A DNA stretch of 32,537 nt from Ministeria vibrans ATCC 50519 (Eukaryota; Protista; Filasterea): positions 74,917 through 107,453 of the forward strand of contig CALSCP010000425.1 of NCBI GenBank assembly GCA_943704425.1. The letters run 5' to 3'. Below, in pieces: positions 1 to 32,537 of the stretch (positions are counted from its first letter, which is position 1; each line of letters starts with the position of its first letter). The notes beneath the pieces are model-generated. The model saw nothing but the letters and a program-made list of their open reading frames with translations, was not told where the DNA came from and searched no databases. Position numbers and translations under genes: made by a program.

Positions 1-54
1 GTGGGCCAATTGGATAAGTCGTATTGTTTTGACTGACGTTGGTTTGTTTTTTAG

Positions 55-2910
55 ACCAAGTCTCCTGCGTCTCGTCACTCGCATGCTCGTCCACGCCGTC
101 CAATGGAGTCTGCGAGTAGGTCAAGCAAGCGCCATTGCAAGTCCTTCCAGCAGCGCGACATGACTCTAGCGACCATTCCGAGCAGTGCTGTTGACACTCC
201 AGTCGAAAAAGGAAACTCCGCACCTGTGTTCGTCCTTGCCATCTCTCCACACGTCAATTCAGGAAAGTCAACTCTGTTGAACACTCTTGTTTCCGACGAC
301 ATTACTATTGGTCTCTCGTACATCTCCCTTCACGACCATCTTCCCCGAAAAATTGTTCCCACCCGTCTCTCGTCTGCTGGTAAAATCAAATAGTGCACTC
401 CAAACTTTTCGTCTCTCACAATCTCTCGCTCGTGTAGCCTCTTTGATTTCTCATGCTCAACTATTTTTAAACTCGGATTGTTGGACTGTACTGGTCGTCG
501 TCAATGCTCGTGCCCTCCGCAACAACTGCCAGTCTGATCTTGAATACGATGCCCTTGCCAGTCTGTGCCAGACCGTCTCCTCAGCCTGCAAGTGCCACCC
601 ACACGTCTTGAACTCGCGCGTCGTCCTTGTCGCCACCCACATTGACCTTTACCCCCTGCCCATCGAAGCGTCTTCTCGTCTGCGTGACGCTCTCCACCCC
701 ATTCTGCCGTTTCTAGTGCGTCCAATCGAAACGCTCGGAGCTGACGGTCTCTTCTTTCCCGTCAGCTGCATCACCGGTCAAGGAGTCGATACGCTCCGTC
801 ATGCTCTGCTTCAAACCCCCTCTTCTTCACTGAAATCACGCCATTTAGCGTCCGTTTCCGAGGCGCTTCGATGCGATACCGATTTACCCCTCATTTGCAC
901 CGTTTCGAATTTCACCGCATTGTGCAGCGCCCATGCTGCGTTTCAAAGAAATTCCCGAGGCGGAAGCAGTGTGCCGCTTGACGCACGGGTTCTTGTTGAG
1001 CACCAGGAACGCAGTCAGTGTGCCGTTGTGTGGCATGCCGACGGTCAAGGGCCACTGACTCTCTCCGATCTCATTGTTGTGCAACCCCGACGCCTCATCG
1101 CTGCACTTGATCTTCTCTACGCAACGGTTTTCGGGCTGGCACAGTCGCGCCATTGGTGGAACACGGCCATTGGCGCTGCGTTTGCTGTCAACGAAATGCG
1201 CACGAGCCGTCTCTTGTCCGACATGAAACACTATCAGCGCTGTCCCGAAGAGGGTCTCCCGCGCGAACTAGCCTGGCTTCTCTGGAGCGTCGCCCCACAC
1301 CTCCCTCAGGTGCAGCAGTGCTTCTTCCCCGACAAAAGCTGTCCTTCTGCCCTTTCCGACATCTTGAATCCTCTGACGCTGCTCAACTTTGTGTACACCC
1401 GTGGCGAGCGTCTCTTCGTGCCGCAGCTACTGCCCACCGACGCCCCGTTCCTCCGTGAGATTCCGCGCGCCAGCAGCATCCAACTGCTTCTCTATCGCAC
1501 CTGCGACTCCACCATTCTGCCTGTCTCGCGTGCACTATTTCATTGTGTTCTCGTGCAGCTCTGGCACGAACTCAACCCAAGCAGTGGTGTGCTTCGAGCG
1601 ACGCAGACGTCGTCGAGTCTCATGACGCTGCCCTTGACATCCTCGTCAACCACCACGCGCTCCGTCCAGGTGCGTCTGAGTCTGGACGAGTCCAGTGCCG
1701 CGCTTCGTCTCGAAGTGTACGCTTCAGAGGTCTCGGCGCGCTGCGTGCGCGACGTCATTACATTCATCACGGACCAGGTGTGTGTAGAGACACAGCATGT
1801 GCAGCACGGCTGGCACGGCCAAGTCCTCGCGGTGCCCGTGCACCCGCACGATCTCACCCAGCCTGTGTTTGACCCTGCTCACGTTGTGCGCGCTCCTGAA
1901 GACTATCGCCAGCGGGACCGAATTGAACGGGTGCTTTTGTCGCACTCTGCAACCCAATGTAACCACAACATTCTGCATTGGTGGTCTCGAGCAAGTAAGA
2001 AAAACAGAAAAAGACATTATTGTTATTAATTGTATTGCTTTTGTTTTTGTCTTGTTTTTTTTTTTTTTTGCTGCTGCGCTGCTGCATAGCTGTCGGAGCG
2101 TACAAACATGCATCTGCGCTGATTATAGGTGTGAGTCGGTATGCGGCTACGGGTAATCCGTGTCTGCAGGCACTGCCGGATCTTCCAGGGGTTCAGGCGA
2201 GTGCGAGACTGCTGGGTCGCCTGTACACCGAGCGCGAGTGGGCGACCGTGGGAGTGGTCGTGGATGACCCATATTTGGGAGAGAGTGAGGTTACGCGAAA
2301 ATATGTGCGTGGCGTGGTATCGCAAATGGCGCAGGAGATGCGAGCGAGAAAGGCTGATGAAAAGGACACGCTGCTGGTGGTGCATCTGCTGGGTCATGGT
2401 GATGGCAGTGGTGGACTGCTACTCAGCGACGCAGGTGAAGTCTCCGATGGAGGTGCTTCTACTGGTTCATTTGGTTTGGACGAGTTGCGTGAGCTGCTTG
2501 AGGATGAGACGGTGGGCTGGAAAGGCTGCAATGTGTTAGTCGTGAGCGATATTTGCGAGGGAGAGATGGTCGCACGTGTCTCGCGGGAGTCAGACGACAC
2601 GACTGAGGCTGTGCCTGGCTATGCGCGACAGTGCATGCACTCGTCGTTGTCCTTTGATACCTATTTGCAGCACAATAAGCGCTACACGCGAATGACTTCC
2701 CTCTGGTGGAGTGCGCTGCAGCAGCAGAGGGCCTTTCGCGTGGGTGAATCCCTTCTGAGTGCTGCAGAGCTGTGTCGTCGTCTGACGCTGATGGACCCGG
2801 CCTTTGAGGAACATCTAGCAATGAGCCGCATCTGGGACTCGTGGTTGTCTGGCGAGACCTCCAACGCTGGCGACATTCTACTTGACAGACCCGAAAAAGA
2901 AGAACAATAA
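55..2910 (+). CDS. Roc-COR GTPase-like protein fused to a C-terminal caspase/metacaspase-like (peptidase C14) domain; exons 55(or ATG 103)-379, 438-1994, 2090-2910; likely continues upstream of the window
   Basis: Roc motifs: P-loop-like VNSGKSTLL, G2-like ITIGL, HAQLFL, G4 VVLVATHID, G5 FPVSCITGQGVDTLR. COR-like motifs LIVVQPRRLI and LFVPQLLP. GT-AG introns 380-437 and 1995-2089 join ORFs 103/287/2020 in frame. Caspase motifs: ALIIGVSRY, LPDLPG, VVHLLGHG (His 2395-2397), VLVVSDIC (Cys 2554-2556). A branch-point-like CTGAC (33-37) and poly-T+AG acceptor (53-54) lie upstream, in frame with ATG 103. Confidence 0.8.
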
Positions 2911-2998
2911 AAAAATAATAATAATAATTATTATTATTTTATTTTGTTCAAAATTTAATACGTCCTTTCAAAACACAAGAAAACAATAATAATAATAA

Positions 2999-3030
<32 letters not shown>

Positions 3031-3357
3031 CTTTGAGACAATTATGCACATTTTTGTGACAATATTAATGCTGACGAAATGCCATAATGAAATGGTTATA
3101 CTAATAAGAATGATCATTTTGAATAATGATTGTCGTGTGTACCCTATTAATTGTGTTGTGTCTTCACGAGTGTCTGTTGTGTGAGCCTTAAGGACGGACT
3201 GCGCGACTAAGGCACTGCATGCTGGTTAATAACTTAATGTCAAGTTTGACAAGTTAACGTATATTGTAAATTATAACTAGAAATGTTTCCGAAGAATAAT
3301 GAGAACCAAAACTCACTATTATTTTGAAATTAATTCTTTTCCTGCTGTCTTTTGGTG

Positions 3358-3372
3358 GTTACCCCTGGCAAC
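3358..3372. promoter_or_regulatory. RFX X-box-like motif GTTACC-CCT-GGCAAC upstream of CAMSAP
   Basis: Matches the GTNRCC-N(0-3)-RGYAAC consensus and lies about 40 nt upstream of the CAMSAP ATG (3414), at the edge of an AT-rich spacer. Confidence 0.55.
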
Positions 3373-3413
3373 GCCGTCTACATTGAGAGGGGCCGCCTCA
3401 GCTGGATCTGCTT

Positions 3414-32276: not shown

Positions 32277-32537
32277 CTATGGCGTCGGTGTGTGCGTGGA
32301 AGCCGATGTGGGAGCGCTGACGACGCCATTGTCGTCGCGGTACAGCAGAATGTCGCCCTCGTTGGGCGGCTCGTCCCAATCACTCCAGATGCGACCTGCA
32401 AGAAGTGCCTGCTTCATGTCGGCGGGGGCCATCGCCTGCAGTCGTCGTCGTAGGTCGCGCACAGAGATGACAGTCTCGCCGGGCGCAAACCCTTCGTGTG
32501 TCGGTCCCAGTGCGCGCACCAGAAGCTCCGTCAGCTG
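32277..32537 (-). CDS. 3' end of a gene running off the window; C-terminus paralogous to the caspase-like tail of gene 1
   Basis: Open frame from 32537 to the stop at 32277: QLTELLVRAL..GFAPGETVISVRDLRRRLQAMAPA..LLAGRIWSDW..NEGDILLYR, compared with gene 1 RMTSLWWSAL..AFRVGESLLSAAELCRRLTLMDPA..LAMSRIWDSW..NAGDILLDR. Confidence 0.8.
   Translation of the reverse strand, partial: QLTELLVRALGPTHEGFAPGETVISVRDLRRRLQAMAPADMKQALLAGRIWSDWDEPPNEGDILLYRDDNGVVSAPTSASTHTPTP

Follow-up and report, generated by a model that had tools for sequence, protein, structure and literature searches.

A gene of Ministeria vibrans predicted to couple a Roc-COR tandem to a caspase-fold protease domain, and its paralogues in the same genome

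The window, as we call the whole 32,537-nucleotide (nt) stretch of Ministeria vibrans DNA analysed here, begins with a gene whose predicted product joins a Roc GTPase domain and a COR domain to a C-terminal caspase-fold protease. Positions 55-2910, together with a 72-nt upstream exon located on another contig (C1286), constitute a single expressed four-exon gene. Taken as a whole, the reading that this is a Roc-COR-caspase gene, that it is a divergent member of a family of paralogues in the same genome, and that its product would operate as a molecular switch is in our judgement likely to be correct. The parts of the gene that lie on the window are the following.

1-54, forward strand: 3′ part of the intron that separates exon 1 from the upstream exon on C1286, with a pyrimidine tract and AG at 53-54; transcript contigs start at 55.
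55-379, forward strand: exon 1, encoding a Ser-rich and basic, probably disordered N-terminus and then the first third of the predicted Roc GTPase domain.
380-437, forward strand: intron 1, 58 nt, GT..AG, phase 1; the joint appears as 378/437 in runs X1 and X5 (58 nt skipped, cut +1).
438-1994, forward strand: exon 2, encoding the rest of the predicted Roc domain, with its switch II region (about residues 1-130 of the exon translation), then COR-A and COR-B (about residues 133-518).
1995-2089, forward strand: intron 2, 95 nt, GTAAGA..AG with a poly-T tract, phase 1, containing an in-frame stop at 2027-2029; it parts COR from the protease.
2090-2910, forward strand: exon 3, encoding the whole caspase-fold (Peptidase C14) domain and ending in the stop codon (2908-2910).
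2911-3040, forward strand: 3′ untranslated region, A-rich and with (AAT/ATT)n microsatellites; transcript contigs stop here.

To define the structure of the gene, assembled contigs of four public runs were aligned to positions 1-3400 of the window. Two of these runs, X1 and X5, were taken to be RNA by guess, and since they are available as contigs and not as reads they give neither expression levels nor transcript ends. The initial annotation, made from the sequence alone, had proposed that three open frames are joined through introns at 380-437 and 1995-2089 into a protein of at least 884 amino acids. Both introns are removed exactly in contigs of X1 and X5. A single 2672-nt contig of run X1 covers 55-378, 437-1994 and 2090-2878, and its own coordinates are unbroken over the joints. 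Run X5, which comes from a separate study, has two contigs, the first on 55-378 and 437-1010, the second on 995-1994 and 2090-2892, again with unbroken coordinates. This indicates that both introns were removed in two independent studies; the 1994/2090 junction predicted for transcripts is thus crossed by contigs from two studies, with intron 2 spliced out. Neither splice joint was seen in the DNA-like run X16. The table of joints gives intron 1 alone, as a repeat filter had removed rows 2026-2086, and the joint of intron 2 was therefore taken from the table of contig pieces. Intron 1 has a GTAAAA donor at 380 and its AG acceptor at 436-437, and intron 2 a GTAAGA donor at 1995 and AG at 2088-2089; with both introns in phase 1 the three open frames join. 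Counted from the ATG at position 103, the frame comprises 277+1557+818 nt, or 884 codons, in agreement with the proposed minimum length. The transcript contigs end at 2878-2892, and the repeat at 2893-3038 is skipped.

The gene does not begin on the window. A contig of run X5 carries 89 extra letters that map to C1286 and end there at a GTAAGT donor (L003:627). This contig of 3146 nt is identical over positions 1-113 (reverse strand) to window positions 1-113, and a run of N lies directly upstream of the window on its own contig, C425; C1286 bridges this gap, and the upstream exon and promoter region are located on it. The overlap and the run of N together indicate that the assembly was broken within the first intron of the gene. 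The upstream exon contributes 24 codons: its ATG is located 72 nt ahead of the joint and is in frame with window position 55 onward, so that the complete open frame is 72+325+1557+818 nt, or 924 codons. A sensor domain upstream of Roc (leucine-rich repeats (LRR), ankyrin or tetratricopeptide repeats (TPR)) had been expected, and this expectation failed: the window copy is without an upstream sensor domain. Ahead of the P-loop there are only about 75 Ser-rich and basic, non-repeat residues, and an in-frame TGA is located 90 nt upstream of the ATG of the upstream exon, with no AG between them. There is no room for a sensor because of this stop and of a divergent neighbouring gene. The latter is a small open frame of 103 residues (L053:1224-1532, forward strand of C1286), located about 500 nt ahead of the upstream exon, with acidic and basic residues, which had no match in Pfam. 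A (CT)n tract lies between it and the upstream exon, and the intervening region is possibly a bidirectional promoter.

Some minor features of the transcribed region are recorded here. A two-base variant at 2610-2611 (TG to CT; a synonymous Ala codon and Val to Leu) is present at about half depth in a DNA-like run and also in one transcript assembly, and is probably allelic; single differences were found at 1299 and 2808 in other runs. The guanine-cytosine (GC) skew of the coding strand is about -0.14 to -0.21 in exons 1-2 and +0.20 in exon 3, though these form one transcript. This change of sign may be due to the protease exon having a different amino-acid composition or an origin of its own.

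Exon 3 was predicted in the initial annotation to encode a peptidase C14 fold with an intact His-Cys pair, and this prediction is supported. The motifs ALIIGVSRY, LPDLPG, GHG and DIC are present, with all coordinates correct, and Pfam Peptidase_C14 (PF00656) matched exon 3 with 25.8 bits against a cut-off of 21.4 (expectation value (E) 1e-5). A structural model of exon 3, built by AlphaFold2 (AF2) with 20 paralogues, has a predicted local distance difference test score (pLDDT) of 85.5 and a predicted template-modelling score (pTM) of 0.88. Foldseek searches with this model gave 281 matches below 1e-3, and those listed are of the caspase, paracaspase or bacterial caspase type throughout; they include GSU0716, which was the top match, MALT1, caspases 1/3/4/7/8/9, CED-3 and metacaspase-4. 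Superposition by VIA-align on caspases, MALT1 and metacaspase-4 gave Z-scores of 16-18 (18.0 for caspase-4 and MALT1, 16.8 for metacaspase-4), with a root-mean-square deviation (rmsd) of about 3.2 over about 200 residues (205 at Z 18.0). In the numbering of the translation of 2092-2907, the catalytic His is residue 102 (HLLGHG), which closes strand 93-103 of the model, and the catalytic Cys is residue 155 (SDICEGE), which closes strand 147-155. Across 21 paralogues GHG is invariant and the Cys nearly so, and the family profile aligns the two residues to the HYSGHG and DSCHSG motifs of Arabidopsis metacaspase-4. The residues after the catalytic Cys are EGE in the window copy and NSG in the family. 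A resemblance to caspases of prokaryotic type had also been suggested; the best NCBIfam match is the bacterial "caspase, EACC1-associated type" (sub-threshold), and the nearest ESM Atlas clusters consist of short bacterial proteins with a caspase domain. As modelled, exon 3 encodes a caspase-fold protease domain with an intact His-Cys pair, and the domain is presumably proteolytic.

The region encoded by exons 1 and 2 is accepted as Roc-COR mainly on evidence of fold and family. Profile searches and folding were done per exon; as the Roc domain is split by intron 1, the model of exon 2 holds only part of it. No family in Pfam or NCBIfam matched exon 2. Its AF2 model, for which the input was an alignment of exon 2 with 21 relatives from the same genome (A1), has a mean pLDDT of 66, with values of 70-92 in the C-terminal third; about one residue in five scores below 50. 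Every one of the best 24 Foldseek matches of this model is a Roco protein of bacterial, archaeal or animal origin; they include 6hlu (E 2.9e-7), the COR-only structure 3dpt (E 6.7e-5), 3dpu, LRRK1, LRRK2 and Roco2 of M. barkeri. When the model was compared by VIA-align, the COR-only chain 3dpt_B came first (Z 13.1, rmsd 4.5, 270 of 299 residues, matching model residues 133-518), with 3dpu_B at Z 12.6 and a background of about Z 7. Residues 1-130 match Ras-like GTPases over the C-terminal two-thirds of the latter (Z 6.4-7.1), and also the Roc domain of 3dpu, 6hlu and the LRRKs. A COR domain directly C-terminal to Roc is thus seen in the modelled fold, not in the sequence profiles.

The paralogues bear on the same point. 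Two of them scored just under the cut-off of 27 with Pfam Roc (26.4 and 26.1 bits), and in the family profile search against PDB the Roc chains of LRRK2 were the sole, weak, matches (E 0.14-0.5). Their motifs follow one another in the order GATEAGKT ... DFAG, a break at the intron position, then ESMYDSLPALFMGSESVYVLVFDLS ... VGTHLD, and the motifs recognised in this part include DFAG, ESMYDSLPALFMG..VFDLS and VGTHLD. We take their G3, switch II and G4 motifs to resemble those of LRRK2; the alignment of the family profile to PDB covers just the stretch after DFAG. In the window copy COR-B ends in CNHNILHWW, and many positions that are invariant in COR are kept. The assignment of a Roc-like GTPase followed by a COR-like region, originally made from the letters alone, is therefore supported by fold, motifs and paralogues; of the three profiles expected to recover the protein, only Peptidase_C14 did so, COR remaining silent and Roc below threshold.

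The GTPase motifs of the window copy itself are degenerate. They were placed by hand against the paralogues, as MAFFT misplaced the P-loop of exon 1. The P-loop (G1) reads PHVNSGKST, with Pro for the first Gly and the Lys-Ser kept, where the paralogues have GATEAGKT. The G3 position spans intron 1 and reads SSAA (exon 1 ends in LSSA), compared with DFAG in the paralogues. G4 is kept as ATHID (GTHLD in paralogues), and a G5-like SCITGQG follows. A long disordered insert located between G2 and G3 of the paralogues is missing. Of the G1, G3 and G4 motifs canonical for Roco proteins, the window copy therefore has lost DxxG, has an atypical G1 and retains G4. Judged from these motifs, it probably binds nucleotide without normal hydrolysis.

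A search of the same genome revealed regions similar to exon 2 and exon 3 that are adjacent to each other, on the same strand and 70-110 nt apart, at dozens of loci. Caspase domains of near-full length were found at 35 loci, besides fragments at contig ends; some of these loci may be allelic contigs. The breaks of the open frame after DFAG and between COR and the protease recur in the paralogues. These sequence comparisons indicate a family of about 35-45 genes that have the Roc-COR-caspase core and two intron positions in common. The window copy is a long-branch outlier of this family: its Roc-COR identity to paralogues is 28-33%, versus 49-99% among the others, and in the protease tree it has a terminal branch of 1.88, versus a median of 0.24. 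In the paralogue on contig C2371 (L041:1434-5717, forward strand), 8-10 TPR_12/TPR_10 repeats are located between the COR-like region and the caspase domain, indicating that in this protein the sensor is placed after the switch and not before it. A near-identical copy of a paralogue, with open frames for WD40, Roc, COR and caspase in a row, is present on a 5539-nt scaffold (L054) of a metagenome in the European Nucleotide Archive (ENA), which indicates that the organism, or a very close relative, was present in that environmental sample. Long single open frames that run across domains in paralogues were dropped as proof of fusion: several are runs of N, and the remaining ones probably include stop-free in-frame introns, judging from donor-like GGTAAG codons and T-rich ends.

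Relatives and precedents were sought in several ways. HMMER searches with exon 2 against 1.84 billion representative proteins gave three matches only. Two of these (P0001 and P0003) come from ENA metagenome assemblies, and P0001 is a near-identical match to paralogues in this genome; the third, a PKD-repeat protein, was rejected because its score is the sum of twelve chance repeats of 31% identity. Word-indexed homologue searches with exon 2, with the 580-residue frame around exon 2 and with the caspase part of a paralogue (L032) gave no matches, but as the query itself was absent from the results these blanks say little. The PADLOC defence models gave no match. A scan of bacterial genomes with the caspase alignment gave one remote match, a Streptomyces caspase-STAND-WD40 protein of 27% identity, which gives no evidence of recent transfer. 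Roc-COR-caspase proteins have been predicted in bacteria, among LRR-AP-GTPase(Roc)-COR-effector conflict systems (Kaur, Iyer, Burroughs, Aravind, eLife 2021; PMC8195603); caspase is among the effectors of these LRR-Roc-COR-effector proteins, for which an immune or conflict role was proposed. No report of a eukaryotic Roc-COR-caspase was found in the literature searched. The initial annotation knew of no characterised eukaryotic example; the architecture is not unique, given the size of the family in this genome and the bacterial prediction of 2021. Relative to the literature searched, the eukaryotic Roc-COR-caspase is new, and its precedent is the bacterial prediction only.

Characterised Roco proteins dimerise via COR, and the nucleotide state of Roc alters the dimer. 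Induced proximity is a common route of activation for caspase-fold proteases. If both properties hold here, a chain made of Roc, COR and caspase would be a nucleotide-gated protease that is activated by dimerisation. The product would be a cytosolic protein of 924 residues (884 if translation starts at the ATG at 103), with a short disordered N-terminus followed by the Roc GTPase, COR and the caspase-fold cysteine protease. As in other Roco proteins, the Roc-COR tandem would act as a nucleotide-dependent dimerisation switch, which would bring two C-terminal protease domains together and so activate them by induced proximity. In other members of the family WD40, LRR or TPR sensor repeats are present, and the family may represent a repertoire of sensor-switch-executioner proteins, each in one chain, for immunity or regulated cell death. 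A large and diversified family with swappable sensor repeats fits such a repertoire. The window copy, which has neither a sensor nor DxxG, may be constitutive in its action, or it may serve as partner or regulator of those paralogues that have a sensor. We infer control by GTP, dimerisation, protease activity and a role in immunity or cell death from domain architecture and from analogy with these known systems.

Several observations weigh against the reading of this gene as a Roc-COR-caspase switch, and some of them are also what its rivals draw upon. Searches and models cover single exons. The Pfam COR models were silent on the exon 2 part and also on seven long open frames of paralogues, and in sequence profiles the Roc signal of the window copy itself consists of P-loop matches to GTPase families that stay below threshold. 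Confidence in the exon-2 model is intermediate, and its global template-modelling scores to Roco structures are low (0.24-0.40) because domain orientations differ. The searches of protein libraries recovered no relatives outside this organism. On such grounds one could propose that the middle region is an unrelated helical/beta domain behind a generic Ras-like GTPase, so that the protein would not be a Roco protein at all. The absent Pfam COR match, the lack of homologues found outside the organism and the fifth of the exon-2 model that is below pLDDT 50 would all agree with this, but the COR-only crystal structure is the best VIA-align match, covering 270 of 299 residues at a Z-score far above background, and the 24 best Foldseek matches are Roco proteins without exception; we consider this proposal highly improbable. 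A homodimer prediction for COR residues 133-518 ended without a verdict and counts neither way. The other weak point concerns the runs, whose RNA nature is a guess. It might be argued from this, from the flip of the GC skew between exons 1-2 and exon 3, and from the short stand-alone bacterial caspase proteins that are the ESM Atlas neighbours of exon 3, that a Roc-COR gene ends at the stop at 2027-2029, that 2090-2910 is a stand-alone caspase-like gene, and that the join is an artefact of assembly. This is largely refuted, and we give it hardly any credence, as contigs of two studies lack precisely 1995-2089, with GT..AG borders and the frame preserved, which the DNA-like run does not show, and as dozens of paralogous loci have the same adjacency and the same break.

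Degenerate G1 and G3 motifs, and EGE instead of NSG after the Cys, are compatible with a protein that is not an enzyme. The window copy could be a pseudo-enzyme: an expressed and catalytically silent decoy or regulator that pairs through COR or through the protease domain with sensor-bearing paralogues and modulates them without cleaving substrates of its own, comparable to cFLIP with respect to caspase-8. The loss of DxxG and of the first P-loop Gly, the absence of a sensor domain, the altered residues after the Cys and the very long branch would all fit; the retained His-Cys pair, P-loop Lys-Ser and G4 THxD, the many invariant COR positions still present, and a protease model that is complete and confident argue otherwise, and on balance we hold the pseudo-enzyme to be unlikely, although it deserves to be kept in mind. 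A decaying paralogue, that is, a transcribed pseudogene in the making without function of its own, would likewise explain why the most divergent member has degenerate GTPase motifs and is without the sensor of other members. Such decay is hard to reconcile with 924 codons that are open over four exons with canonical splice sites, with a spliced product found in the transcript assemblies from two or more studies, with the conservation of core structural and catalytic residues, and with good fold models; we regard it as very unlikely. A more speculative idea, and one that we put forward as rather doubtful, is that the window copy is a common helper or brake, which would form heterodimers through COR with those Roco-caspases that bear WD40, LRR or TPR and would supply or block the second protease domain. 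If that were true, it would mean networked, GTPase-based immune receptors in a unicellular eukaryote, parallel to the sensor/helper networks of plant nucleotide-binding LRR receptors (NLRs) and to caspase-8/cFLIP.

The reading as a Roc-COR-caspase switch can be compared with several known systems. With the bacterial LRR-AP-GTPase(Roc)-COR-effector systems (PMC8195603) the family shares a single chain in which Roc-COR is followed by a C-terminal caspase effector, many paralogues per genome with sensor repeats in most members, and a protease whose nearest relatives are bacterial-type caspase domains (ESM Atlas; sub-threshold EACC1-associated NCBIfam match). Unlike these predicted systems, the window gene is eukaryotic with spliceosomal introns, its GTPase is degenerate, and it is without LRR or any other sensor, whereas an N-terminal, fast-evolving LRR sensor characterises the bacterial proteins. 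The paralogues here use WD40 or TPR besides LRR, and the closest bacterial relative found is the 27% identical Streptomyces protein. Since the host is a eukaryote, the family is to be seen as an analogue or a descendant of the bacterial AP-GTPase-COR systems and not as a member of them. LRRK2, LRRK1, DAPK1 and MFHAS1 have the Roc-COR tandem fold in common with the window protein (matches of the family profile in PDB being to LRRK2 Roc only), but their output is a kinase or death domain instead of a cysteine protease, and the window protein has neither their ankyrin or armadillo repeats nor DxxG. The Roco protein of Chlorobium tepidum (3dpt, 3dpu, 6hlu), a model for GTP-dependent COR dimerisation, is the best structural match of the COR region, yet sequence identity is about 10%, and CtRoco has an N-terminal LRR and no protease.

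APAF-1/caspase-9, NLRs/caspase-1 and the bacterial or fungal STAND-caspase proteins resemble the predicted system in that a caspase-fold protease is assembled by an NTPase switch and activated through proximity; the likeness is one of working, not of membership. In contrast to the apoptosome and the inflammasome, the switch here would be a Ras-like GTPase with COR and not a STAND ATPase, in one chain that does without recruitment through CARD or death domains. As for metacaspases and orthocaspases, the HxxGHG and DxC[HN]SG motifs of the family align to Arabidopsis metacaspase-4, and Geobacter GSU0716 led the Foldseek matches of exon 3; the family match is weak, however (profile E 0.0035), and the window copy reads DICEGE.

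LRRK2 is the main reason why Roco proteins are studied, and the way in which Roc-COR governs an output domain remains a matter of debate. With its caspase-fold output, a natural family of this kind would offer cleavage as a simple read-out of the Roc-COR switch, and it would be a counterpart, in a eukaryote, of defence proteins that in bacteria have so far just been predicted. The window copy would be a natural minimal version, without sensor and without DxxG, from which the contributions of the sensor and of GTP hydrolysis could be learned. Provided that the host is a unicellular organism closely related to animals, a large repertoire of Roco-caspases bears on the pre-animal origin of NTPase-driven caspase activation and of innate immunity.

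Two further observations concern neighbouring sequences. An open frame of 643 residues with an NB-ARC match (Pfam E 6e-9; L032:3-1931, forward strand of contig C2822) lies directly upstream of a paralogous Roc-COR-caspase gene on the same strand; it may be an NLR-like gene next to the paralogue, or else belong to a giant fusion. Near the far end of the window, at 32331-32498 on the reverse strand, there is a C-terminal fragment (about 57 residues, E 2e-4) of a further caspase domain that belongs to this family, whose gene would continue past the window end.

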